A stretch of DNA of 64,000 nt from Anaeramoeba ignava BMAN (lineage: Eukaryota; Protista; Anaeramoebae): NCBI GenBank assembly GCA_028826165.1, contig JAPDFW010000074.1, positions 361,535 through 425,534 of the forward strand, read 5' to 3'. The first letter of the stretch is position 1, and each line of letters opens with the position of its first letter. Position numbers and translations under genes: made by a program. Positions 35,401 through 57,193 of this stretch are shown piece by piece. The notes under the pieces were generated by a model. It had not been told where the DNA came from. It ran no database searches and worked only from the letters and a program-made list of their open reading frames with translations.

Positions 35401-36460
35401 TCTTTTTGTAAATATAAAAAATGAGAATAGATTTAATTTAATATTTAATTTATAAATTAATTTAAAAATATAATTTAATATTTAATTTTATGTTTAAAAT
35501 AATAATTTAATGTTTTAGATTTAAATATTTTATTATTTAAATATTTAACATAAAAATATAAAAAATAAGAATAGATTTAATTTAATATTTAATTTATAAA
35601 TTAATTTAAAAATATAATTTAATATTTAATTTTATTATTAAAATAATAATTTAATGTTTTAGATTTAAATATTTTATTATTTAAATATTTAACATAAAAA
35701 TATAAAAATAAGAATAGATTTAATTTAATATTTAATTTATAAATTGATTTAGAAATATAATTTAATATTTAATTTTATTATTAAAATAATAATTTAATGT
35801 TTTAGATTTAAATATTTTATTATTTAAATATTTAACATAAAAATATAAAAAAATAGAATAGATTTAATTTAATATTTAATTTATAAATTAATTTAAAAAT
35901 ATAATTTAATATTTAATTTTATTATTAAAAATAATAATTTATTGTTTTAGATTTAAATATTTTATTATTTAAATATTTAACATAAAAATATAAAAATAAG
36001 AATAGATTTAATTTAATATTTAATTTATAAATTAATTTAAAAATATAATTTAATATTTAATTCCAATATCAAAAATAATAATTTAATGTTTTAGATTTAA
36101 ATATTTTATTATTTAAAATATTTAACATATAAATATAAAAATGAGAATAGATTTAATTTAATATTTAATTTATAAATTAATTTAAAAATATAATTTAATA
36201 TTTAATTTTATTATTAAAATAATAATTTAATGTTTTAGATTTAAATATTTTATTATTTAAATATTAAACATATAAATATAAAAAATGAGAATAGATTTAA
36301 TTTAATATTTAATTTATAAATTAATTTAAAAATATAATTTAATATTTAATTTTATGTTTAAAATAATAATTTAATGTTTTAGATTTAAATATTTTATTAT
36401 TTAAATATTAAACATATAAATATAAAAAATAAGAATAGATTTAATTTAATATTTAATTTA
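35401..36460. repeat. ~144-bp AT-rich satellite array (7 full copies and a partial copy)
   Basis: The GAATAG anchor recurs at 35425, 35569, 35712, 35856, 36000, 36145, 36289 and 36433. Confidence 0.92.
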
Positions 36461-36931
36461 GAAATTTGAAGGAAATTCAAAAAGAAAAAGAAAACAAAAT
36501 TCTTTAATTAATTTTTTTTATTGATCAAAAAAGAAAAAAGAAAATGAGTCATTTTGTGAAATTTGTTTCTCATTTTTCTTTAAATAAAGATTTTAAATAA
36601 AAATTTAAATTTATTTTTTTTGCTTTTTCAATTCATTTTTCTTTTCTTCTTTTTTTATTTTTTGATTTGAGAAAATAATTTAATTTAAAAAAGTAAGTTA
36701 AAAGAGAATTGGATTAATTTATTATTTTTTTTTAACAAGTTCTTCTTTTCTTTTCTTTTCTTTTATTTTGAAATTTAGCAAACTTAAAAAAAAAAAAGTA
36801 AGATAAAAAAAGTAAGATAAAAAAAAGCAAAATTCTTTTTTTATTTTAAATAAACCAAGCAAATAAATAAATTAATTTTCTTTTTTATTCTTTATTTTTT
36901 ATTTTTTTGAAACAAACAAAAAAAAGGCAAA

Positions 36932-39900
36932 ATGAAAGCAATTCTTCTTAGTTTCTTTTTATTAAATCTCTTGATTTCCATTGGATCAAATCAGAATCAA
37001 GAAACAGTATCATTATCAACACCACAATCAAGATATTTTTCTTCTGGAGATGAAGGTTATATTTGGAAGTTAATTGACACTCTTTATGGAACCGGTATTT
37101 TTGGATGGGGAATTTCAATTTATGGAGATATTTTAGCAATTTCTGAGAGAATGATGGAAGAGATCTATGTTTACAAATTTAATGGAACAAATTTTGAAAA
37201 TATACAGAATATTACTGAGCCTCCAGGTACAATGGTAGGAAATTTGCTTTCAATTTATGAAGATATACTTGTTGTTGGTTCTGATGGTACAGATGAAGTA
37301 TTTATTTACAGAAACAACGATTCATATTTTGAAAGTATACAGAATATTAGTGGACCTGCTGGTTCATATTTTGGAGCGCGTGTTTCGGTTTATGAAAATG
37401 CTCTTGCTGTTGGAGCATGGGGAATAGATCAAGTATTTATTTACAGAAACAACGATTCATATTTTGAAAATATACAGAATATTACTGGACCTGCTGGTTC
37501 ATATTTTGGATGGACTGTTTATGTTTATGAAAATGTTCTTATTGTTGGAGCATGGGGAATAGATCAAGTATTTATTTACAGATATAATGAATCTATTTGG
37601 AATTTTGAACAAAATTTTACTGGAGCTTCAGGTTCAAGATTTGGATTTTCTGTTTCAGTTTATGAAAATGTTCTTATTGTTGGAACTCGTGATACAGATG
37701 AAGTATTTATTTACAGATATAATGGAACTATTTGGAATCTTGAACAAAATTTTACTGGAGCTAATAATTCAAATTTTGGATATTCTGTTTCAATTTATGA
37801 AGATGTTATTGTTATTGGTGCCTCTTATGCAAATCAAGCATATATTTACAGATATAATGGAAATTTTTGGTATCTGGAAGAATTTTTTAATCAAACTTCA
37901 GCTGTAAGTTTTGGAGAAAGTGTTACAGTTCATGAAAATTTTACAGCTATTATCGATCCTACCTACCCTATAACATATGTCTATCAATGCTATTTTATTC
38001 TACAAGTTAATATTCTTAATTGTTCATCTTTGTTTTCATCATTTGATTGTTATTGGGATAAAATAGAATGTGGATTAACTTTGAAATATCAAATTAATTA
38101 TGGATATGATTGGATTGATATTGATTCTCCAATTCTTGAAGATGGAAATGTTTATTATCAATTATTTAATTCTTCATTTTATGATAATATTACTGGGAAT
38201 GAATATTATCCTATTCAAATTCATGCTTGTGATGTTGAATCATTAATTTGTGGAGAAGCATCTTCATTTTTTAATTTAACAACAAGAATTGATTCTGTAA
38301 AAGATTTCCAATTATTAAATCCAACTTCTTTTTCAATTAATATTACTTGGAATCATCCAAATGTCTCTTTAGATGAAGATATTGCTCATCTTGATCATTA
38401 TAATCTTTCTTATTTCACTCAATGTGATCCTGAATCAGTTTCATCTATTTCAATTGATAATTCATCAACTTCATATCTTTTAGATATTGAATGTGGAAAT
38501 GATTACAATGTTTCAATTTGTGGGTGTAGAACACATGAATGTGAAGGAGAAGATAAAGGAGAAGTTGTTGAATCATCTATTTCAATTCCTTTTCAAGATA
38601 TTGAAGATTTAACATGTTCAATTCAATATGCATTAGATATTAATTGTAGTTGGAATCAACCAATTAATTGTTCAATTCCATCTTATTATAATTTTAGTTA
38701 TCAAGCAATTTCAGAAGATGAATCAGGAAATGAAAATCTAACATCATCAAATCAATATTTCACAAATTATTTGCAAAATCAAGAATATCAAATCAATGTA
38801 TCAGCATGTAATTCAATGAATAAATGCTCTAATATCTCAACAACATCAGCTACAACTGATAATTTAACAACTTCTCCAACAATTTATGAAACAATTTCCA
38901 AAATTGAAGAAATTGAAATAATATTCACAAAAGTAACAGGAGCTTATAATTATTCAATTTCACTTAATAATGGAACAAATTGGCAAAATTTCACATCTCT
39001 TGATTTAGGTGGAAGTGAAGGTATTGGAATAATAAATGAATTATCAGGAAATATTGAATATAATATTTCAGTTAGAGGATGTTCAGATTTAAATTGTAAA
39101 ACTGAATATTTAGGAGAATCAAGTTCAATCATTTCAACAAAAGCTAAATTAGGAAATATTACTTCATTAAGTTGTTCTTCGTTGATTTGTGGATTTGAAT
39201 GTACTTGGGATTCATTAAATTTATCAACAGGATTAAAAGCATATTCATTTAGATACAATTCAACAACAACTTGTTTCCAAGATTTAAGAACAAGTCATTC
39301 AATTTTATCAGGATTAATTCCATCAGCAAATTATGAAATTTCAGTTTACTCATCAGCAACTACAGATTGTTCTTATAATGAATATTCAGGAATTGAAACA
39401 ACAACAATAGTAACAACAGATAATTTACCAGCACCAACAATTAATCAATTAATTTCCAAAATTGAAGAAATTGAAATAATTTTCACAAAAGTAACAGGAG
39501 CTTATAATTATTCAATTTCACTTAATAATGAAACAAATTGGCAAAATTTCACATCTCTTGATTTAAGTGGAAGTGAAGGTATTGGAACAATAAATGAAAT
39601 ATCAGGAAATATTGAATATAATATTTCAGTTAGAGGATGTTCAGATTTAAATTGTAAAACTGAATATTTAGGAGAACCAAGTTCAATTAATTCAACAAAA
39701 GCTAAATTAGGAAATATTACTTCATTAAATTGTTATGGAATATTTAATGGATTTGTTTGTACTTGGGATTCATTAAATTTATCAGATGGATTAAAAGGAT
39801 ATCTATTTAGATACAATTTAATAACAATTTGTTTCCCAGATTTAAGAAATTATTATTCAATTTCAGGAGTAAATGGAGGAGAAATTTATGATATTTCAGT

Positions 39901-40168
39901 TTATTCATCAGCAACTTCAAATTGCACTCTTAATGAATATTCAGGAATTGAAACAACAACTTCAGTTACAACATTATCACCAACTCAAACAAGTGAAAGT
40001 TCATCAAAAGCACCAATAATAGCATTAGCAGTAATTGTTCCAGTTCTTGTTATTGCAGGAGTAATTATAATAATTGTTTTGATTAAGAAACAGAAAAAAA
40101 GTATCAAAACAATTATCAAACAAAGAGAAAAAGAACTTGAAAAATCAGGAGGAATTGAAATGATTTGA
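36932..40168 (+). CDS. Type I surface protein: signal peptide, 7 FG-GAP-like blades, Cys-rich FN3-like repeats, TM helix, short basic tail (paralogue C)
   Basis: 40-aa repeats FGxSVSxYExxxxxGA...YRYNG; FN3-like W...Y...Y.I.V motifs; TM IIALAVIVPVLVIAGVIIIIVLI followed by KKQKK. Confidence 0.85.
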   Translation: MKAILLSFFLLNLLISIGSNQNQETVSLSTPQSRYFSSGDEGYIWKLIDTLYGTGIFGWGISIYGDILAISERMMEEIYVYKFNGTNFENIQNITEPPGTMVGNLLSIYEDILVVGSDGTDEVFIYRNNDSYFESIQNISGPAGSYFGARVSVYENALAVGAWGIDQVFIYRNNDSYFENIQNITGPAGSYFGWTVYVYENVLIVGAWGIDQVFIYRYNESIWNFEQNFTGASGSRFGFSVSVYENVLIVGTRDTDEVFIYRYNGTIWNLEQNFTGANNSNFGYSVSIYEDVIVIGASYANQAYIYRYNGNFWYLEEFFNQTSAVSFGESVTVHENFTAIIDPTYPITYVYQCYFILQVNILNCSSLFSSFDCYWDKIECGLTLKYQINYGYDWIDIDSPILEDGNVYYQLFNSSFYDNITGNEYYPIQIHACDVESLICGEASSFFNLTTRIDSVKDFQLLNPTSFSINITWNHPNVSLDEDIAHLDHYNLSYFTQCDPESVSSISIDNSSTSYLLDIECGNDYNVSICGCRTHECEGEDKGEVVESSISIPFQDIEDLTCSIQYALDINCSWNQPINCSIPSYYNFSYQAISEDESGNENLTSSNQYFTNYLQNQEYQINVSACNSMNKCSNISTTSATTDNLTTSPTIYETISKIEEIEIIFTKVTGAYNYSISLNNGTNWQNFTSLDLGGSEGIGIINELSGNIEYNISVRGCSDLNCKTEYLGESSSIISTKAKLGNITSLSCSSLICGFECTWDSLNLSTGLKAYSFRYNSTTTCFQDLRTSHSILSGLIPSANYEISVYSSATTDCSYNEYSGIETTTIVTTDNLPAPTINQLISKIEEIEIIFTKVTGAYNYSISLNNETNWQNFTSLDLSGSEGIGTINEISGNIEYNISVRGCSDLNCKTEYLGEPSSINSTKAKLGNITSLNCYGIFNGFVCTWDSLNLSDGLKGYLFRYNLITICFPDLRNYYSISGVNGGEIYDISVYSSATSNCTLNEYSGIETTTSVTTLSPTQTSESSSKAPIIALAVIVPVLVIAGVIIIIVLIKKQKKSIKTIIKQREKELEKSGGIEMI

Positions 40169-43435: not shown

Positions 43436-44253
43436 TTTTGTTCTTCTTCTTCTTCTTTTTTTTTTCAAAACCAAACAAAATCAAATCAAATCAAATCAGA
43501 AAATCAAATCCAAAATCAAATCAAATCAAAATCAAAATCAAAATCAAAATCAAAGGAAATAAAAAACGAAAAATTGTTATTCCAATTTAAACCTTTTTTC
43601 TTTTTGTAAATATAAAAAATAAGAATAGATTTAATTTAATATTTAATTTATAAATTAATTTAAAAATATAATTTAAAGCCTTCCCCGCAAGCAAAAATAT
43701 TTTGTCATTTTTTCCCCTTTTGAAGTGACAGCTGTCACTTTGAAAAAAAAATAAAAAAAAATAAAAAATTTGATTTTTCCCCTTTTTATTAAAAAAAATA
43801 ATTAAAGAATAGATCAAAAAAATATCAATTTTTTCTATTTGGAAAAAGAAAAAGAAATACTACTTTTTTTTTATTTGGGACAATCTCCATAATTTCATAA
43901 TCCAAAACTTTTCAAACAAATTTTTATCTTTTGGAAAATTTTGTTGAATATCTCTTCATTTTGGTTCTTTTTTCTATTCTGTTTCATACAACTGAACTTG
44001 ATTATTTGAGAAAGAAATTGATGAGAAAAATTCAATTAATGATATGAATAAGAAATTTATGAGAATTCAAAAGATAATTGTTTTGATCAATTTTTCAAAT
44101 TTTTCTTTTTCATTTTGAAATATATTAATTTTAACTGAATCCAATACAAAATTCAATTATTTCCTTCAACAAAAATTCTTTATTTTTCTTTGTAAAAAGA
44201 TTTTGAAAAATAAAAGATGTGAAAAATGATTTGAAAAAAAATCAATTTAACGT

Positions 44254-45624
44254 TTAAAAATTAGAGAGATTCATCAAAAAGAAAAATGAATTGTGCCGAT
44301 ATTTTTGGGGTGATTTTTGTATTATATCTTGAATGAATTCTGGTGATTTGAATAATAATTGAATTCTGGTTGATTTACAAATACATTTTAGGATCATGAA
44401 TCTAAATCTGACAGCAAGTGAATGGTTGATAATTTCCACTGCTTTTTCAATAGGAATTTTAATAGTGAAAATCAACCATAAAAAAAGTAGTACTGAATTC
44501 CCACATTGGGCGCCATCTTCTTGGATTTTTTTCTTGACTAGTTCTTCAATTTCATAATTTTCATTTATGCGCCATTTAATATACTGTTTTATATGATTTC
44601 CCATATCTTCTACTTCCTTTTTTGCATATTTTGGAATAGTGTTATATAAATAGATTTTATGAAATTGTTTATCAATCAAAAAACACACATAATGATGATT
44701 AGTCAAATATATTATTGGTATAATATCTAAAGGTTCCTTTTCATCCCATTTCATCAATCTTTCGCATTCTTCAAAATTAAATAATATTGTTCTTAATTGC
44801 TTCCAATCATCCACTCCTTTCTCAAATTCTATTAACGATTCAAACAATTCAATTTGGTTTCTGAGTTCTGGAGACATCAACCAATTAGAAAAGACATCTA
44901 TTTTGTTCATTCTCGGTCGATTTTCAACGAAATTGTTGAAATGGTCAATCAATTTGGGATAACTTTTTTTTGAAGCTTCTAAAAATTTATCAAAATCTTC
45001 ATAAATTTGATTTCTTCTGTTTTTGAATGCTTGAAAATCTTTGTATTCTTGATGTAATTTTTGGATCGTGGGTTCAAAATCTAATCTGGTAAATTCTACA
45101 TCATTTTGATATTGAGGATATAAAAAATTTACTAATCCAATAGACAAATCTTGAGACTCCAGCATTTGCTCTAAGTCCCATCTTTTCCACCATGATCCTT
45201 GTATCCCACTTGGAAGATACAGATTAATGGGGTTATCAATTAAATCATTCAGAAATCTCTTTATTTCTTCTCTTTTGTTGTGTATATAATCTTCCTCAAG
45301 GAGTTGAATTTCTCTGGGTTTGGGAAGTTGAATATTTTGGATAGCATTATGATTGTTTGTTTTTGTTTGAATGGGAACGTCATTTTTATTATCGATTTTA
45401 CTTTTTCTTGATAACAATGAAGGATTTTGATTGGAAAAAATGTGCAAATCATGTATATTGGGACATGAGTTCTCTGTTTCCTTTTGAGTTTGTTTATGAG
45501 TTTCTTTTGGATTTAACATCTCCAAAGCATCTTTGAAATGGATTTGAAATGTAGGAAGCAAGGAATAGTTTTCAAAATCAAACAAATTGGGTTGAATCTT
45601 ACTTAATAAAAATGTTGAGATCAA
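44254..45624 (-). CDS. Transposon-borne ORF with a C-terminal Ulp1/SENP (C48)-like cysteine protease domain
   Basis: IIPIIYLTNHHYVCFLID...IYLYNTI...IQEDGAQCGNSVLLF matches the clan CE pattern H...D/N...QxDGxxCG. Confidence 0.75.
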   Translation of the reverse strand: MISTFLLSKIQPNLFDFENYSLLPTFQIHFKDALEMLNPKETHKQTQKETENSCPNIHDLHIFSNQNPSLLSRKSKIDNKNDVPIQTKTNNHNAIQNIQLPKPREIQLLEEDYIHNKREEIKRFLNDLIDNPINLYLPSGIQGSWWKRWDLEQMLESQDLSIGLVNFLYPQYQNDVEFTRLDFEPTIQKLHQEYKDFQAFKNRRNQIYEDFDKFLEASKKSYPKLIDHFNNFVENRPRMNKIDVFSNWLMSPELRNQIELFESLIEFEKGVDDWKQLRTILFNFEECERLMKWDEKEPLDIIPIIYLTNHHYVCFLIDKQFHKIYLYNTIPKYAKKEVEDMGNHIKQYIKWRINENYEIEELVKKKIQEDGAQCGNSVLLFLWLIFTIKIPIEKAVEIINHSLAVRFRFMILKCICKSTRIQLLFKSPEFIQDIIQKSPQKYRHNSFFFLMNLSNF

Positions 45625-45638
45625 GTTTTTTTTTGTTT

Positions 45639-48048
45639 TTAAACTTGCTTTTTTGGTGACTTTCTACTTCTTTTTTTTTCTTTTTGAGGAGGGACAATTT
45701 CTTCTGAGCTATTTCTTTTCTTTTTTTTGATTCTTGAGAGAGTTAAATTCTTCAAATAAGATGTACTTTTTTGAAAGATACCTGGTAAAGAGAGATGAAG
45801 TAATTCTTTTTGCCATTCCATATCTTTTTCTTTTTTTTGATTTTCTTGTAATACATTTTTTTCATTGAATTCAATTTCGTTTTCTTGGTTTCCTAAATTT
45901 ATTTCCTTTTCATTTTCTTTTTCCTATTTTGGTTCCAATCAATGATGGCAAGTTGATAAAGAAGATTATAATTTTTAAAATGACTTATTTTTTCGCGATA
46001 ACCGTTTAAAGTGCTGAAAAAGGATTCGTTGTAGCTTGTGGATAAAAAATATCTACAAAAAATTAATTTTTAATAATGGTGAAATCAGAAAGTATCATTT
46101 TGAAGAATGCTTCCTCCTCTTTGTTTGTAATTTTTTTATCTTCAGGATGTTTATTTTCGTTTGAATTTTCATTTTTTGTGCATGGACTATTTTTTGGGCA
46201 AAGGGAATGATCGCCTTTAGCGTGGAGAAAATATCTAAACCATTCAGATAATAAAGTCGTCATATCGCCTTGGCAAGATTTTGCACATCTTAGAAAATGG
46301 AAAATTATAGATTCTTTCCATGACATCAAATGTTCTTTTTTTTTTCGCATTTTCTCGCTTTCTTTCTTTTGAGCGTTTCTTTTTATTTGATCCACAGAAT
46401 TTGTTAACAAGTTTGTTGTATCTTCTTCGAATTGATCTAGTTACGTGCCAGGGATCTAGTAAATGCATGATATTCGGGAAACACTGTTTAACTTTAGATG
46501 AGGTATTCTGGTCATGGACCGTGGCAAGGATATTGTATTTCTCCGAAAGCTTTTGTATTCCTTTGGGAATCAAAAATCCCTCTAAACTTTGTGGATGGAT
46601 GGTTGAAGTTGAGCTCATTCTTTGGTAATGTATAATTCTGTTAAATTTTGTGTTCGCTTCAATAAAAATTGCGCATGCATCTGCAGCTCGGTTATTCCGA
46701 TGTGAATATGCTACATCATGAGAAAAAATCGAATCTATTTTTTTAGTGGAATCGACTTCTGGTTGAGATTCATTCTCTATCTGTTGATTTGAATTATTCT
46801 TGTTCTGATCTTTTCTTTCGATTGAATTTTTTTTTTCATTACTTATGACTAATTGATATATTTTTTCTTTGAGGTCTAGAAGGGAAGATGAATTTGTCAA
46901 TTCTTTATTAATAAATAATTTTCTTGAGGAGTTAGCAATTTTATCAATATCTTTATCAGATATAAAGTGATTTTTCATATGTTCCATGGTTTGTGTTGAA
47001 GAAGGATCAGTAGATTGTTCTACTTCCTCTGCAGATAAATCTAGAATTGATTCTGCCATGCTATTAACTATTGGAGCTAATTTGATTTTAACTTCATCGC
47101 AATAATCTTGCAATCCATCTTGTGTCTTGATTTCAAATAAGTTGAGGAATCTATAAAATTTTGAAATACTGATTCCTACAATTTTTGTCCCAATATTAAA
47201 TGCAGATCTCATTTTGCGATCGTTTTCATATAGTTTTCTGAATTTTTTAATTGATTTAGATTCAATTTTTGTTTTTTCCTTTCCTTTTCCCTTTTCATTT
47301 TGATTGTTTTCATTTTGATTGTTTTCATTTTGATTGTTTTCATTTTCACCATCAAGTGAGGTTTGATTTTGAGAGAGATTTTTGAGTGAATCTCTTTTCA
47401 TTTGTTCTTCCTCCTTCTTTTTTTCCTTTCTTTTCGGTTTAGTAATTTTCCAATAATATACACTATCTCTCAAATTCCCAATTTTAATCTGATTTTTTTC
47501 CACTTGTGTTTTTAAATCTTGATTTTCTTTTGTAAGTTGATACATCAAATGTGAGTGGATTGTGATTTGTTGATTCTTCAAATTTTCTTTTTCCTTTTGA
47601 ACTTCACACAGATTTTCTCTAAGTTCCATTTCAGTTCTAGCGATGCTGTCACATTTTTCATTGAGGATATTCACCCAAGAGAGAGTTGTTTTCAATTGTT
47701 TTTTGACTTCTTTATAAATTGAGAATTGGTGATTGATTTCTTTTTTTTGTTGTTGAACCAACTCTTTTAAATAATCTAATTCTTGTTTGAGGCAGCTATT
47801 TTCTTCTTTGATATCCTTGTTTTCCTGAATAAATTTTTTCTGAAAAAAGATGGAATGAGAAAAAATTAAAAAGAAGCAAAATAACTAAAATATACCATTT
47901 TTAAATTATCTCTATAGCACCGATTACATATTTTATTACTTTTTCTTCTTGGAGTAGATTCTAATTTCAAAAATAATTCATTTTTGGATGGAACTTGGGC
48001 TTTAGGGATTTTTTTTTTCCCACAAATATAACAAGTTATTGCTTTCAT
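45639..48048 (-). CDS. Kolobok-type DDE transposase with N-terminal C2C2 zinc finger and coiled coil (intron 47840-47895; homopolymer frameshifts)
   Basis: CYIC...CNRC finger. Candidate catalytic D (FSHDVAY, about 46716), D (TVHDQN, about 46512) and E (TSYNESF, about 46026). Also HLLDPWHV, WKESIIFH...W...H...H..C and LAIIDWN. Confidence 0.78.
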
Positions 48049-48754
48049 GTAAAAAACGAATTAAAACAAAGATTTGAAAAAAAAATAAAAAGATAAAACA
48101 GAATAAGAAAATAGAAAAAAAGAAAAAAATTTTAAAAAAATGTCAAAAGAAAAATGTTTTGTGATCTTGTTGTTTTTTTTTTATAAAATATTTTTTTTTA
48201 TTTAAATAGTGTTTGTCAACAAATAAGAAAAAAAAGTAAGAGAAAAAACAAATAAAAATAAAAATAAAAAGAAGATTAATGGTTGAAATCGACAAAATAA
48301 ATGATCAATGAGTTGATATAAAAATTTGAAAAATGCCAATTTTTGATCAACAAATAAGCATCCCATTTCTATAAAACACGAAAGTTTTTGAATTTATTTG
48401 AACCTAAATAAGAATATAAAATAATCTATAAATTAAGCATGTTGAAAAAAATAGGACCAGATTCTGAAAGTTCTGCAACAATAGAAATTATTGATTTCAA
48501 TAAAATTTTAATAATTTTTTTCATTCTTGAGCATGAAAATTAAATTTAAATCTAATCTTCTAATTATTTATATGCAGCAGCTTGAGTATATCATTTCCTA
48601 AAATGGATATTTTGAAAAAAAAATCACCTGATAAGCTTCGAAAGTTAGATATATTTGCTTTTATTAATCATTTTTCTCAATTTTTTGAGAATGATTACAC
48701 TTAATTTTTTGTAAGTGTAAGTAAAAGAAAATATTTTTGCTTGCGGGGAAGGCT

Positions 48755-49095
48755 TTAATATTTAATTTTATTATTAAAATAATAATTTAATGTTTTAAAT
48801 TTAAATACTTTATTATTTAAATATTAAACATAAAAATATAAAAAATAAGAATAGATTTAATTTAATATTTAATTTATAAATTAATTTAAAAATATAATTT
48901 AATATTTAGTTTTATTATTAAAATAATAATTTATTGTTTTAGATTTAAATATTTTATTATTTAAATATTTAACATATAAATATAAAAAATGAGAATAGAT
49001 TTAATTTAATATTTAATTTATAAATTAATTTAGAAATATAATTTAATATTTAATTTTATGTTTAAAATAATAATTTATTGTTTTAGATTTAAATA
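48755..49095. repeat. 144-bp satellite array; continues the array that starts at about 43595 and is split by the transposon
   Basis: Same unit as 35401-36460; the unit is interrupted exactly at TTAA. Confidence 0.9.
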
Positions 49096-49250
49096 TAAAA
49101 TAAATAAAAAAAAGTGGAATGAAATTTTGATTTTTATTTTGATTTTCTTTTCTTGGTTTTTGAAATTGAAAAAAAAGAAAATGAAATTAGAATTGAAAAA
49201 AGAAAAATGAAAAGAAGGAAATTGTTTGAAAAATGAAATGAAAATTGAAA

Positions 49251-51977
49251 TTAAATATCCAAATCATCTTGAAGTTCTTTTTCTTCTTTGTTTTCTTCTT
49301 GTTTTTTTGATTTTGATTTTCTTCTTTTTTTCTTTTTATATAAAATAATTCCAATAATAATTATTGAAATAACCAAAAGAGGAATAATTATTCCTAAAGT
49401 TATTGCTGTTGTTTTTGAATTATTATTAGATTCATTTGTTGATGATATTGTAATTGATGTTGTTGAATTAATTCCTGAATATTCATTAAATGAACAATTT
49501 AAATCAGCTGATGAATAAATTGAAATTTCATAATATTCTCCTCCTTTTAATCCTGAAACTGAATAATTTGTTGTTAAATTTGATAAACAAATTGATATTG
49601 AATTATAAGTAAATGAATATGCTTTTAATCCACTTGATAAAATTAATGAATCCCAATTACATTCAAATCCATTAATTAATGAATTACAAGTTAATGAAGT
49701 AATATTTCCTAATTTAGCTCTTGTTGAAATAATTGAACTAGGTTCTCCTAAATAAGGTGTTTCACAATTTAAATCTGAACATCCTCGAATTGAAATATTA
49801 TATTCAATATTTCCTGATATTCCACTTATGATTCCAATACCTTCATTTCCACTTAAATTAAGAGATGTGAAATTTTGCCAATTTGTTTCATTATTAAGTG
49901 AAATTGAATAATTATTTGCATTTGTTAATTTTGTGAAATTAAATTCAATTTCTTCAATTTTAGAAATTGTTTCATAAATTGTTGGAGCTGCTGGTAAATT
50001 ATCAGTTGTAATTGAAATTGATGAAATATATCCACATTTTCCATTTGAATTACATGCTGATATATTGATTTGATATTCTTGATTTGGAAATTGAACTGTA
50101 AATTGTTGATTTAATGAAGTTGGTTGATAATTTCCTGAATCATTTTGATAAATTGATTGATAAGTTAAATTATAATAAAATGGAATTGAACAATTAATTG
50201 GTTGATTCCAATTACAATTAATATCTAATGAATATTGAATTGAACATGTTAAATTTGTAACTTCTCCAAATATTAATGAAATTGATGATTCAACAAGTTC
50301 TCCTTTATCATCTCCTTCACATTCTTGTGTTCTACATCCACAAATTGAAATATTATAATCATTTTCACATTCAAAATTATTCCAAAGATAATCAAGTGAA
50401 GAATTATCAACTGAAATTAAAGATATTAAATCAGGTTGAGATTTATTTAAATAAGAAAGATTATAATGATCAAGATGAGCAATTCCTTCATCGATTTGAA
50501 CATTTGGATAATCCCAAGTAACATTAATTGAATAATTTGAAGGATTTGATAATTGAAAATCTTTTACAGAATCAATTTTTGTTGTTAAATTAATGAAAGA
50601 AGAAGATTCACCACATTTCATTGTTTCATTATCACAAGCTTTGATTTGAATTGAATAATATTCATTCCCAGTAATATTATCATAATTTGAAGAATTAAAT
50701 TGTTGATAATAAGCATTCCCATCTTCAAGAATTGGAGAATCAATATCAATCCAATCATATCCATAATTAATTTGATAAATCAATGTTAATCCACATTCAA
50801 TTTGATCCCAATAACAATCAAATGATGAAAACAAAGATGAACAATTAAGAATATTAACTTGAGGAATGAAATGAGCTTCATAAACAAATGCTTGATTTGC
50901 ATCATAAGCTCCAATAACAGTAAAATTCCCATAAATTGAAACAGAATTCCCAAAATCTGAAACTGAAGATTCATTCAAATTTTGTTCTTGATTCCAAATT
51001 GTTCCATTAAATCTGTAAATATATGCTTGATTTGCACCAGAAGCACCAACAACAATAACATCTTCATAAATTGAAACAGAACCTCCAAAAGTTGAAACTG
51101 AAGATTCATTCAAAATTTTTTCTTCATTCCAAATTGTTCCATTATATCTGTAAATATATGCTTTTCTTGCACCAGGAGCACCAATAACAATAACATCTTC
51201 ATAAATTGAAACAGAATTCCCAAAAAATAAAACTGAAGATTCATTCAAAATTTTTTCTTCATTCCAAATTGTTCCATTATATCTGTAAATATATGCTTTC
51301 TTTGCATCATTAGCTCCAATAACAATAACATCTTCATAAATTGAAACAGAATATCCAAAATCTGAAACTGAAAATTCATTCAAAATTTGTTCTTCATTCC
51401 AAATTGTTCCATTATATCTGTAAATATATGCTTGATTTGCAACATAAGCTCCAATAACAGTAAAATTCCCATAAATTGAAACAGAATATCCAAAATCTGA
51501 AACTGAAGATCCATTCAAAATTTGTTCTTGATTCCAAATTGTTCCATTATATCTGTAAATATATGCTTTATATGAAATAGAAGCACCAATAACAATAACA
51601 TCTTCATAAATTGAAACAGAAGATCCAAAAAGTGAATATGAAGATCCATTCAAAATTTGTTCTTGATTCCAAATTGTTCCATTATATCTGTAAATATATG
51701 CTTTATTTGCAACATTAGCTCCAATAACAATAACATCTTCATAAATTGAAACAGAATGTCCAAAATATCCTGGATTTGAAAATTGATTTAATAAATTCCA
51801 AATCCAAGCTTCATCTAGAGTAGAATAATATCTTGTTGTTTCTGTTAATAATCTTGTTGTTTCTAATTCTTGAATTATTGTGGAAATTGAATTTTTTTGT
51901 TGATCTTGATTTGATTGAATTAAGAAAACATTAATAATTAAGAAAAAGGAAAAGGAAAAGAAAAGAATTAATTTCAT
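49251..51977 (-). CDS. FG-GAP propeller (7 blades)/FN3-like/TM surface protein (paralogue A)
   Basis: Intact 908-aa ORF with signal peptide, 40-aa repeats, TM AITLGIIIPLLVISIIIIGIILY and a KKKKRRK tail. Confidence 0.87.
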   Translation of the reverse strand: MKLILFFSFSFFLIINVFLIQSNQDQQKNSISTIIQELETTRLLTETTRYYSTLDEAWIWNLLNQFSNPGYFGHSVSIYEDVIVIGANVANKAYIYRYNGTIWNQEQILNGSSYSLFGSSVSIYEDVIVIGASISYKAYIYRYNGTIWNQEQILNGSSVSDFGYSVSIYGNFTVIGAYVANQAYIYRYNGTIWNEEQILNEFSVSDFGYSVSIYEDVIVIGANDAKKAYIYRYNGTIWNEEKILNESSVLFFGNSVSIYEDVIVIGAPGARKAYIYRYNGTIWNEEKILNESSVSTFGGSVSIYEDVIVVGASGANQAYIYRFNGTIWNQEQNLNESSVSDFGNSVSIYGNFTVIGAYDANQAFVYEAHFIPQVNILNCSSLFSSFDCYWDQIECGLTLIYQINYGYDWIDIDSPILEDGNAYYQQFNSSNYDNITGNEYYSIQIKACDNETMKCGESSSFINLTTKIDSVKDFQLSNPSNYSINVTWDYPNVQIDEGIAHLDHYNLSYLNKSQPDLISLISVDNSSLDYLWNNFECENDYNISICGCRTQECEGDDKGELVESSISLIFGEVTNLTCSIQYSLDINCNWNQPINCSIPFYYNLTYQSIYQNDSGNYQPTSLNQQFTVQFPNQEYQINISACNSNGKCGYISSISITTDNLPAAPTIYETISKIEEIEFNFTKLTNANNYSISLNNETNWQNFTSLNLSGNEGIGIISGISGNIEYNISIRGCSDLNCETPYLGEPSSIISTRAKLGNITSLTCNSLINGFECNWDSLILSSGLKAYSFTYNSISICLSNLTTNYSVSGLKGGEYYEISIYSSADLNCSFNEYSGINSTTSITISSTNESNNNSKTTAITLGIIIPLLVISIIIIGIILYKKKKRRKSKSKKQEENKEEKELQDDLDI

Positions 51978-52574: not shown

Positions 52575-53425
52575 TTTTTTTCTTTTTGTAAATATAAAAA
52601 ATAAGAATAGATTTAATTTAATATTTAATTTATAAATTAATTTAAAAATATAATTTAATATTTAATTTTATTATTAAAATAATAATTTATTGTTTTTAAA
52701 TTTAAATACTTTTATTATTTAAATATTTAACATAAAAATATAAAAATAAGAATAGATTTAATTTAATATTTAATTTATAAATTAATTTAAAAATATAATT
52801 TAATATTTAATTTTATGTTTAAAATAATAATTTAATGTTTTAGATTTAAATACTTTATTATTTAAATATTTAACATATAAATATAAAAATAAGAATAGAT
52901 TTAATTTAATATTTAATTTATAAATTAATTTAAAAATATAATTTAATATTTAATTTTATGTTTAGAATAATAATTTATTGTTTTAAATTTAAATATTTTA
53001 TTATTTAAATATTTAACATATAAATATAAAAAATGAAAATAGATTTAATTTAATATTTAATTTATAAATTAATTTAAAAATATAATTTAATATTTAATTT
53101 TATTATTAAAATATTAATTTATTGTTTTAGATTTAAATATTTTATTATTTAAATATTTAACATAAAAATATAAAAATAAGAATAGATTTAATTTAATATT
53201 TAATTTATAAATTGATTTAGAAATATAATTTAATATTTAATTTTATTATTAAAATAATAATTTAATGTTTTTAAATTTAAATATTTTATTATTTAAATAT
53301 TTAACATATAAATATAAAAAATGAGAATAGATTTAATTTAATATTTAATTTATAAATTAATTTAAAAATATAATTTAATATTTAATTTTATTATTAAAAT
53401 AATAATTTATTGTTTTATATTTAAA
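52575..53425. repeat. 144-bp satellite array (about 6 copies)
   Basis: Same unit and same leader (TCTTTTTGTAAATATAAAAAAT) as the other arrays. Confidence 0.9.
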
Positions 53426-53584: not shown

Positions 53585-56181
53585 TTAAATATCCAAATCA
53601 TCTTGAAGTTCTTTTTCTTCTTTGTTTTTCTTCTTGTTTTTGATTTTGATTTTTCTTTTTTTTCTTTTTATATAAAATAATTCCAATAATAATTATTGAA
53701 ATAACCAAAAGAGGAATAATTATTCCTAAAGTTATTGCTGTTGTTTTTGAATTATTATTAGATTCATTTGTTGATGATATTGTAATTGATGTTGTTGAAT
53801 TAATTCCTGAATATTCATTAAATGAACAATTTAAATCAGCTGATGAATAAATTGAAATTTCATAATATTCTCCTCCTTTTAATCCTGAAACTGAATAATT
53901 TGTTGTTAAATTTGATAAACAAATTGATATTGAATTATAAGTAAATGAATATGCTTTTAATCCACTTGATAAAATTAATGAATCCCAATTACATTCAAAT
54001 CCATTAATTAATGAATTACAAGTTAATGAAGTAATATTTCCTAATTTAGCTCTTGTTGAAATAATTGAACTAGGTTCTCCTAAATAAGGTGTTTCACAAT
54101 TTAAATCTGAACATCCTCGAATTGAAATATTATATTCAATATTTCCTGATATTCCACTTATGATTCCAATACCTTCATTTCCACTTAAATTAAGAGATGT
54201 GAAATTTTGCCAATTTGTTTCATTATTAAGTGAAATTGAATAATTATTTGCATTTGTTAATTTTGTGAAATTTAAATTCAATTTCTTCAATTTTAGAAAT
54301 TGTTTCATAAATTGTTGGAGCTGCTGGTAAATTATCAGTTGTAATTGAAATTGATGAAATATATCCACATTTTCCATTTGAATTACATGCTGATATATTG
54401 ATTTGATATTCTTGATTTGGAAATTGAACTGTAAATTGTTGATTTAATGAAGTTGGTTGATAATTTCCTGAATCATTTTGATAAATTGATTGATAAGTTA
54501 AATTATAATAAAATGGAATTGAACAATTAATTGGTTGATTCCAATTACAATTAATATCTAATGAATATTGAATTGAACATGTTAAATTTGTAACTTCTCC
54601 AAATATTAATGAAATTGATGATTCAACAAGTTCTCCTTTATCATCTCCTTCACATTCTTGTGTTCTACATCCACAAATTGAAATATTATAATCATTTTCA
54701 CATTCAAAATTATTCCAAAGATAATCAAGTGAAGAATTATCAACTGAAATTAAAGATATTAAATCAGGTTGAGATTGATTGAAATAAGAAAGATTATAAT
54801 GATCAAGATGAGCAATTCCTTCATTGATTTGAACATTTGGATAATCCCAAGTAACATTAATTGAATAATTTGAAGGATTTGATAATTGAAAATCTTTTAC
54901 AGAATCAATTTTTGTTGTTAAATTAATGAAAGAAGAAGATTCACCACATTTCATTGTTTCATTATCACAAGCTTTGATTTGAATTGAATAATATTCATTT
55001 CCAGTAATATTATCATAATTTGAAGAATTAAATTGTTGATAATAAGCATTCCCATCTTCAAGAATTGGAGAATCAATATCAATCCAATCATATCCATAAT
55101 TAATTTGATAAATCAATGTTAATCCACATTCAATTTTATCCCAATAACAATCAAATGATGAAAACAAAGATGAACAATTAACAATATTAACTTGAGGAAT
55201 GAAATGAGCTTCATAAACAAATGCTTGATTTGCATCATAAGCTCCAATAACAGTAAAATTCCCATAAATTGAAACAGAATATCCAAAATCTGAAACTGAA
55301 GATTCATTCAAATTTTGTTCTTGATTCCAAATTGTTCCATTAAATCTGTAAATATATGCTTTCTTTGCATCATTAGCTCCAATAACAATAACATTTTCAT
55401 AAATTGAAACAGAATATCCAAAATCTGGAACTGAAAATTCATTCAAAATTTTTTCTTCATTCCAAATTGTTCCATTATATCTGTAAATATATGCTTGATT
55501 TGCACCAGGAGCACCAACAACAATAACATCTTCATAAATTGAAACAGAACCTCCAAAAGTTGGAACTGAAGATTCATTCAAAATTTTTTCTTGATTCCAA
55601 ATTGATCCATTATATCTGTAAATATATGCTTGATTTGCACCAGGAGCACCAATAACAATAACATCTTCATAAATTGAAACAGAATTCCCAAAAAATAAAA
55701 CTGAAGATTCATTCAAAATTTGTTCTTCATTCCAAATTGTTCCATTATATCTGTAAATATATGCTTGATTTGCAACATAAGCTCCAATAACAGTAAAATT
55801 CCCATAAATTGAAACAGAATATCCAAAATCTGAAACTGAAGATCCATTCAAAATTTGTTCTTGATTCCAAATTGTTCCATTATATCTGTAAATAAATACT
55901 TGATCTGCAACATTAGCTCCAATAACAATAACATCTTCATAAATTGAAACAGAATGTCCAAAATATCCTGGATTTGAAAATTGATCTAATAAATTCCAAA
56001 TCCAAGCTTCATCTGGAGTAGAATAATATCTTGTTGTTTCTGTTAATAATCTTGTTGTTTCTAATTCTTGAATTATTTTGGAAATTGAATTTTTTTGTTG
56101 ATTTTGATTTTGATTTGATTGAATTAAGAAAATATTGATAATTAAGAAAAAGGAAAAGGAAAAGAAAAGATTTAATTTCAT
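53585..56181 (-). CDS. FG-GAP propeller (6 blades)/FN3-like/TM surface protein (paralogue B), tandem duplicate of paralogue A
   Basis: ORFs 54244-56181 and 53598-54377 are joined by a single-base homopolymer frameshift near 54270. The stalk is nearly identical to paralogue A. Confidence 0.85.
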
Positions 56182-57193
56182 TTTTTGTTGTTTTGCATTT
56201 TTTGTTTTGTTTTGCTATTTTTTATTTTAAATTAAATATAAAATTAATAAAATAAATTTATTTTTTGTGTTTATTTGTGTTTATTATTTAAAACAAATTT
56301 GTTTTTTTACTTTTTTGCTTTTGTTTACTATTTTTTGTTTTAAATTAAATATAAAATTAATAAAATAAATTTATTTTTTGTGTGTTTATTAATTAAAACA
56401 AATTTATTTTTTTACTTTTTTGTTTTTGTTTTTGCTTGTTGAAAAAAAAAATGAAAAGAAGAAAAAATGATCAATTTTATTTTTTAAATTAAAAATCCAG
56501 TAAAAAAAATTATTTTTTCTGTTTGTTTCTTGTTTAATTAAAAAATTGAATAAATGAATTTAAAATTAAAATATATTTAAGAATAATTTTTTATTATTAA
56601 TTAATGATAATTTCTATTCAAATTAATGAAATAAATTTTAATTTAAATTTTCCAAAAAAAAAAAATAAATTTAATAAGAATTTAATAAGAATTTAATAAG
56701 AAAAAGAAAGAGAATTTTATTTCTAAATCTAAATTAAAATCTAAATTAAAATTAAATTTAAAATCAAAATCAAAATTAAAATCAAAATTAAAATTAAAAT
56801 TAAAATTAAAATTAAAATTAAAATTTTGAGAATTTTCTTTTAAAAAAAAGAGATCAAAAGAAAATAAAAAGAAATTTATAAAGAATTCTAAATTAAAATT
56901 AATTTAAATTTTTGAAATAAAATTGATTTAAAAAGAAAAAAAGAGAAAAAGAGAAAAAAACTCAAAAAAAAAAGAAATTATTCATAAATTAATCATAAAT
57001 TAATAAAAAAAAGAAAATAAAAGCAAAAAAAATTAATTTGATTAAATTCATTCTTTTTCTTTTCTTTTCTTTTCTTTTTTTATTTTTGATTTTCAATTCT
57101 TTTTAAAAAATTTTGTAAGAAAAAAGAAAAAAATTCCAATTTATCCAAAAAATAAAAAATTTTAATCTTTTTTCTTTTTTAAATTCTTTTTAG

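Follow-up and report, generated by a model that had tools for sequence, protein, structure and literature searches.

A stretch of 64,000 nucleotides from Anaeramoeba ignava BMAN (contig JAPDFW010000074.1, positions 361,535 to 425,534 of the forward strand; this whole stretch is the window below, and unprefixed positions are counted within it) contains, between 43677 and 48754, a transposon in which a DDE transposase is accompanied by a protease, and the question raised by this locus is whether a member of the Kolobok superfamily has there acquired an enzyme of the Ulp1/SENP kind, in what form, and to what end. The original prediction described a Kolobok-like element with a second, same-strand downstream open reading frame (ORF) for the protease, in the place of the usual KolX gene. 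The transposase is indeed of Kolobok type; the protease, for which a CE-clan fold is predicted, is not a second gene, but the C-terminal domain of the transposase ORF. The features of the element are the following (C, L and P numbers are our handles for contigs, loci and proteins):

43673-43676: TTAA target-site duplication, left copy
43677-48754, minus strand: complete Kolobok-type DNA transposon, family 1, 5,078 bp
43677-43703, plus strand: 27-bp terminal inverted repeat (TIR) at the element's 3' (protease) end, starting with AG, the same in all five copies
44280-45250, minus strand: predicted CE-clan (Ulp1/SENP-like) protease domain
45180, 44694, 44643, 44523 and 44505, minus strand: WDxxxxL..D N-terminal motif, His, Asn, oxyanion Gln and Cys of the protease, respectively
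45650-45660, minus strand: 4-nt loss in an A run, private to the window copy, which splits the single ORF
45800-46740, minus strand: Kolobok-type DDE core, with three 1-nt frameshifts in the window copy
46717, 46513 and 46456-46445, minus strand: first D (SHD), second D (HDQ) and DPWH
46027, minus strand: catalytic E, within the motif TSYNESF at 46039-46019
47100-47839, minus strand: start of exon 2, with a coiled-coil-like region, a variable-length N/E/Q repeat and a block conserved in family 2 (NDRKMRSAFNIG...)
47840-47895, minus strand: predicted GT-AG intron of 56 nt, with an identical splice in P0001 and P0005, both gene models of NCBI
47896-48048, minus strand: exon 1, 51 codons, with a CxxC-x29-CxxC finger (putatively DNA-binding, not THAP)
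48728-48754, minus strand: 27-bp TIR at the element's 5' end
48755-48758: TTAA target-site duplication, right copy

The limits of the element had been correctly foreseen: its 27-bp TIRs are perfect, have AG...CT termini and are flanked on each side by TTAA. A search of the genome for further copies returned five full-length members of this family (family 1), 97-99% identical, each at a separate locus and all inserted at TTAA. The window copy lies in a dispersed 144-bp AT-rich repeat, and because its flanks, when joined across one TTAA, recreate the neighbouring repeat unit at 48888, which thus represents the empty site, the TTAA was duplicated upon insertion. The element has spread recently and has the anatomy of a cut-and-paste transposon of Kolobok type, probably an autonomous one. 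Old remnants of family 1, as well as a more animal-like Kolobok fragment, are found at C35:497100-497825, C35:505709-506053 and C1:87225-87590 (L046).

Both the TTAA duplication and the RR...YY ends are common to this element and the Kolobok superfamily (Kapitonov and Jurka 2007; Kojima and Bao 2022, PMC9587614), as are a DDE core with C/DxxH and the zinc finger between DxxH and E, which all lineages but Kolobok1 possess. In an alignment of 45 sequences, D16, D84, D103-P-W-H106 and E246 are conserved, together with H155, H180, H185 and C188/C194, which make up the finger between DxxH and the catalytic E; the DDE core contains these H/C residues and also a C-terminal WQKELL...IF motif. Exons and domains were used separately in the homology searches. 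A profile of family 1 and a second A. ignava family (family 2, see below), run against 1.84 billion proteins, gave 156 matches, the best from outside being the metagenomic proteins P0010 and P0011 (E about 1e-33). The element that encodes P0011 measures 2,278 bp, runs from TTAA and AGACCTGCCCGC... to ...GCGGGCAGGTCT and TTAA, is present at four insertion sites and has a 577-aa transposase as its sole product; on metagenome contigs L061-L064 this minimal Kolobok-type element has 13-bp TIRs and no accessory gene. The other matches are mostly animal-type proteins, with THAP in 17 of 68, and one of them, P0039, belongs to a true Kolobok0, since it lies within an element starting TTAA-AG that also has a THAP domain upstream and, on the opposite strand, a gene for KolX (P2RX7_C). 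The DDE core is homologous to that of Kolobok0 (the Kolobok-1_XT type, with THAP and KolX) at E values of 1e-8 to 1e-13, L067 being verified with KolX, and hhalign joins the transposase profile to the match set with 99.8% probability (E=1e-28). Compared by eye, the motifs follow the order of the Kolobok alignment in the literature, and the motif around the first D, DVAYSHRNN, is similar to those of trichomonad families, such as Kolobok-1_TV (DARWTHRRN). The fold of the transposase model (predicted local distance difference test, pLDDT, 87) is RNase H-like and contains a helical insertion, and about 200 residues of the model align to the ISCth4, Hermes and P-element transposases. The transposase is therefore Kolobok-type, as had been proposed.

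In a quick tree, both A. ignava families form one long-branched group with the two metagenomic, transposase-only relatives P0010 and P0011 (Shimodaira-Hasegawa-like approximate likelihood ratio test, SH-aLRT, 99), apart from the THAP set; this tree comprises the match set alone, without Repbase sequences or a non-Kolobok outgroup, so that nesting inside Kolobok is not formally placed by it. Membership of Kolobok0 was rejected: the element stands on a separate branch, no PF05485 (THAP) match was obtained in it with Pfam, and neither a P2RX7_C match nor any other ORF was found in it that might be KolX. The absence of KolX is, however, ordinary, because KolX is confined to Kol0, and in several lineages of Kolobok the transposase is the only product (PMC9587614). 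Two other superfamilies were considered and set aside. Elements of piggyBac have YY...RR ends (5'-CC) and a DDD core; here the ends are AG...CT, DxxH and E are present, and no piggyBac Pfam family appears among the matches. In MULE/Mutator the target-site duplication is variable, of 8-10 bp; here TTAA is fixed, and the MULE/PF20700 Pfam scores are weak and common to Kolobok0 relatives. In comparison with the published Kolobok lineages, the element has no THAP, no KolX and no CCHC finger after the first D. The predicted C2C2 finger is present (48048-47908, minus strand), its best Pfam match being C1_2 at only E=0.07 and no Atlas match being found, and exon 1 also occurs in the NCBI model M0811_03984.

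An accessory enzyme downstream of the transposase is also known in KolobokE and KolobokH, but for none of the lineages in PMC9587614 (KolobokD, E, H, P and others) is a CE-clan protease listed. The protease was absent from 150 transposase matches, many of which are fragments, and so this is no proof for elements elsewhere. Word-based protein searches returned no proteins other than those of A. ignava. Patterns drawn from the DDE and protease alignments led to no confirmed relative in metagenome, viral or prokaryotic contigs, and Pfam scans of the window's ORFs gave nothing useful.

As to the form in which the protease is carried, five indels break the frame of the window copy (46365, 46072, 45925, 45655 and 44282), and the break at 45655, which lies between transposase and protease and gave the appearance of two genes, is absent from L002, L003, L004 and L005. 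At that point L002 and L003 hold four more bases than the window copy, and L004 and L005 have a common allele, six bases shorter, in which the frame is likewise kept; the junction is thus open in four of the five family-1 copies, and the frames of L002 (939 codons) and L003 (876 codons) continue out of the transposase into the region of the protease. Since two different alleles each preserve the frame, a column-majority consensus of the copies mis-splits the ORF and was set aside. Fusion is independently proven by family 2, whose copy at C68:366671-372376 (L035, L052) has DDE core and protease within one unbroken frame of 1,534 codons, with long NK/NENN repeat insertions. This copy has AGCCTTC-type TIRs, related to those of family 1 and 5,706 bp apart, with TTAA at its 3' end and TAAA at its 5' end; further family-2 loci lie at C69, about 257000-262949 (L039, L040, L053), and from C68:465750 to the contig end (L045).

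That there could instead be two separate genes, or a programmed frameshift or hidden intron between them, is highly improbable. No family-1 copy is free of breaks in the assembly, and the NCBI annotation gives split genes; but the breaks differ in position copy by copy, mostly in or beside homopolymer runs, at least two of L001-L004 are open at any given junction from one motif to the next, and the frame of family 2 is whole. A hidden intron joining the domains is, moreover, unnecessary where four copies are open. The assembly rests on R9.4 nanopore reads with Racon, Nanopolish and Pilon (10.1101/2023.03.03.530753), because of which frame errors are to be expected in near-identical repeats, although the family-1 breaks may be real decay. 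The family-1 product is thus predicted to be a single fusion protein, about 1,250 aa long, with the protease as its C-terminal domain, and its domains are probably ordered as C2C2 finger, coiled coil, DDE transposase, charged linker and CE-clan cysteine protease. The public annotation is corrected accordingly: KAJ5071396.1 (P0003, 1,947 aa, ‘aardvark’), KAJ5079676.1 and KAJ5075284.1 (‘deneddylase 1’) are models on transposon copies, which split these into hypothetical proteins and a host-like ‘deneddylase’, or join one copy to a neighbouring host gene.

The protease motifs of the original prediction are all in place on the minus strand, beside DPWH and TSYNESF: HHY at 44697, YNT at 44646 and QEDGAQCG at 44523-44500. 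Clan CE admits Asn as the second residue of the triad, its order being His, Asp/Glu/Asn, Cys, with an oxyanion Gln (PMC1847702), and the residues H, N, Q, C and G are invariant across five families of only 15-37% identity. Searched against PDB sequences, the family-1 domain finds ChlaDUB2/SnCE1 (E=0.009), and the five-family profile finds ChlaDUB1 (E=2e-5) and SENP2 (E=0.01). The AlphaFold2 (AF2) model, with a core pLDDT of 76-89, superposes on Ulp1 (1euv) with a VIA Z of 13.7 (root-mean-square deviation 3.8 Å over 191 residues), on NEDP1 with Z 13.3 and on SENP1 with Z 13.2; in the ranking of structures, CE-clan and related cysteine proteases come first, followed by a drop to Z about 5, where the first fold unlike CE appears, with viral CE proteases at Z 9-11 and acetyltransferase-type CE folds at Z 7-8. 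The domain is accordingly predicted, from motifs and model, to have a CE-clan fold of the Ulp1/adenain kind with a His-Asn-Cys triad. Its fold, the order His-(Asp/Asn)-Cys and the oxyanion Gln are shared with Ulp1/SENP1-7, NEDP1 (SENP8), ChlaDUB1/2, SnCE1 and ElaD/SseL, but identity to these is 10-20%, with orthology to no single subfamily, and a helical insertion of about 110 aa separates the N-terminal W-L-x-D helix from the catalytic sheet. Pfam C48 (PF02902) is matched in two of the five members (best E=2e-4); family 2 scores 19.4 bits against a cut-off of 20.7.

Between families 1 and 2, amino-acid identity is 48-50% in the DDE core and 37% in the protease, and because fourfold-degenerate sites are saturated (28% and 21% identity, respectively) while the proteins have stayed this similar, purifying selection must have acted on both domains.

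The same protease also occurs outside Kolobok within this genome. It is C-terminal on DDE_Tnp_4 (PIF/Harbinger, PHIS) ORFs at C117 (L055) and C74 (L056), and it ends the protein of a four-copy PHIS family at C126, C134 and C137 (L057-L060), in which the DDE part and the beginning of the protease share a frame at C126 and C134; more distant PHIS-type carriers lie at C35:574411-576054 and C98:18483-20162. The 3' ends of the four-copy family are followed by ATT, AGT, ATT and AAT, which, on the 3' side only, would fit the ANT target-site duplication of Pangu (PMC4482050). By sequence, at least four Harbinger/PHIS-type families of A. ignava thus bear a protease of this type. Kolobok and PHIS proteases share the core, N-terminal motif, insertion and Asn, and hhalign relates them with 94.6% probability, at a score of 52 against a shuffled maximum of 17; the PHIS proteases are mutually 22-25% identical, a deeper divergence than the 37% between the Kolobok families. 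This suggests a domain swap between superfamilies, and since the closest relatives outside are protease-free Kolobok elements while four divergent PHIS families carry the domain, we infer as the simplest reading that Kolobok captured the protease from a co-resident PHIS element in the Anaeramoeba lineage. Further Peptidase_C48 matches lie at C20:8105-8674, C114:172868-173518, C1:785183, C41:8872, C64:986884 and C109:127747, in frames of 677-946 codons, which may be host SENPs or further transposon fusions.

What could the protease do on a transposase? The transposase would bind the TIRs and integrate at TTAA, and the tethered protease would take ubiquitin or a ubiquitin-like modifier (SUMO or NEDD8) off the transposase itself or, alternatively, off chromatin or repair proteins at the transpososome; the element would in this way escape degradation or silencing, or steer the repair of the break. 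Such removal of ubiquitin, SUMO or NEDD8, whether it acts on the transposase or on other proteins where transposition takes place, is the likelier function. Bao et al. (PMC2836005) proposed a like role for the Ulp1/OTU domains of Ginger1, and Ginger1 and MULE (KAONASHI/VANDAL), with C-terminal Ulp1 or OTU, have the same design; the same source gives as parallels MULE, Helitron and an IS5-like transposase of Trichomonas, the last of which bears a C19 peptidase and is likewise a DDE transposase with a deconjugating protease. Ulp1/OTU/USP domains on transposases thus have a precedent. Of the earlier statement that MULE, Ginger and Zisupton carry Ulp1 cargo, the first two parts are borne out there, and nothing relevant was found for Ulp1 with Zisupton in the searchable literature. 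In contrast to Ginger1 and MULE, the transposase here belongs to an unrelated superfamily, and the protease has His-Asn-Cys, the helical insertion and a remote similarity to Pfam C48.

Several observations weigh against the reading as a whole: (i) none of the five family-1 copies is intact in the assembly; (ii) the direction of the domain swap is unrooted; (iii) the family-1 domain has no Pfam C48 match; (iv) family 1 has neither of the two tryptophans typical of the Gly-Gly tunnel region of Ulp1 (QML for GWL, HY for HW); (v) and finally, the insertion is placed where CE proteases set specificity, because of which the substrate is not readable from sequence. In view of the missing tryptophans, some probability, albeit a small one, must be granted to an active enzyme of other chemistry or to a non-catalytic module that binds ubiquitin-like modifiers. 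Acetyltransferases and dual-activity enzymes exist among CE-fold proteins, and folds of the former type align to the model too; His is followed by Tyr or Phe instead of Trp in all five families, and the insertion is large and novel. The full triad and the oxyanion Gln are preserved, however, and the top structural scores are those of SUMO/NEDD8 proteases.

Self-processing, in which the protease frees or matures the transposase as viral adenain, I7L and pS273R do on polyproteins, was also suggested in the original prediction and has lost ground, being improbable now: the protease does lie in the same polypeptide after a long linker, viral CE proteases have the same fold and the nearest language-model neighbours are unnamed Nucleocytoviricota clusters, but neither Kolobok family has a Gly-Gly or adenain-type site, their linkers have no common motif past the transposase end, and the nearest relative transposes without a protease. 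Still less probable is a passive cargo taken from a host gene with no part in transposition. The multiplication of the closest relatives (L061-L064) without a protease and the presence of other C48 genes in the host would agree with it; yet the in-frame fusion has kept an intact active site in two Kolobok families despite saturated silent sites, and fusion and active site are likewise kept across the PHIS families. Deconjugation by a tethered protease is thus the function that we favor.

As for the surroundings, the 144-bp repeat is dispersed and tandem, its units 92-97% identical, in the window at 35475-36466, 48755-49185 and 52655-53374; it also occurs in the flanks of L002, L005 and L055, and the insertion sites of the window element and of the PHIS element at C117 lie within or beside it. 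Paralogous FG-GAP repeat / fibronectin III membrane proteins are encoded at 36911-40165 (plus strand), 49254-51977 (minus) and 53601-56214 (minus), each close to an array of this repeat. Ubiquitin-like domains are matched at least 127 times in the genome; polyubiquitin arrays are among these matches, as are many ubiquitin-like repeats that stand in tandem and are divergent.

The combination of transposase and deconjugase is a design already known from other superfamilies, and its pairing with Kolobok was not found described: no report of Kolobok with Ulp1 appears in the searchable literature, a coverage outside which Repbase and subscription journals lie. The proposal of an undescribed lineage, defined by a C2C2 finger and a protease without KolX, therefore holds as regards the lack of a prior report, but not as regards KolX and THAP, whose absence is not distinctive. 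If true, the two Kolobok families would be a new protease-bearing lineage. The protease is an addition to the list of Kolobok accessory domains. A role for Ulp1/OTU on transposases has been proposed since 2006-2010, no demonstration of which was found. That role becomes testable with an element that is young, compact and specific for TTAA, of which family 2 offers an unbroken copy and of which a relative without the protease exists; this transposase-only relative would be, if the reading is true, a natural control on transposon-borne Ulp1 domains. In one genome, the same protease subfamily sits on two unrelated transposase superfamilies, which points to shared host selection and to domain exchange between elements. 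It is conceivable, though we hold it only tentatively, that A. ignava restrains its DNA transposons via a ubiquitin-like-modifier pathway, and that the CE-protease cassette, with its His-Asn-Cys triad and helical insertion, would be a portable counter-defence passed between Kolobok and PHIS elements.

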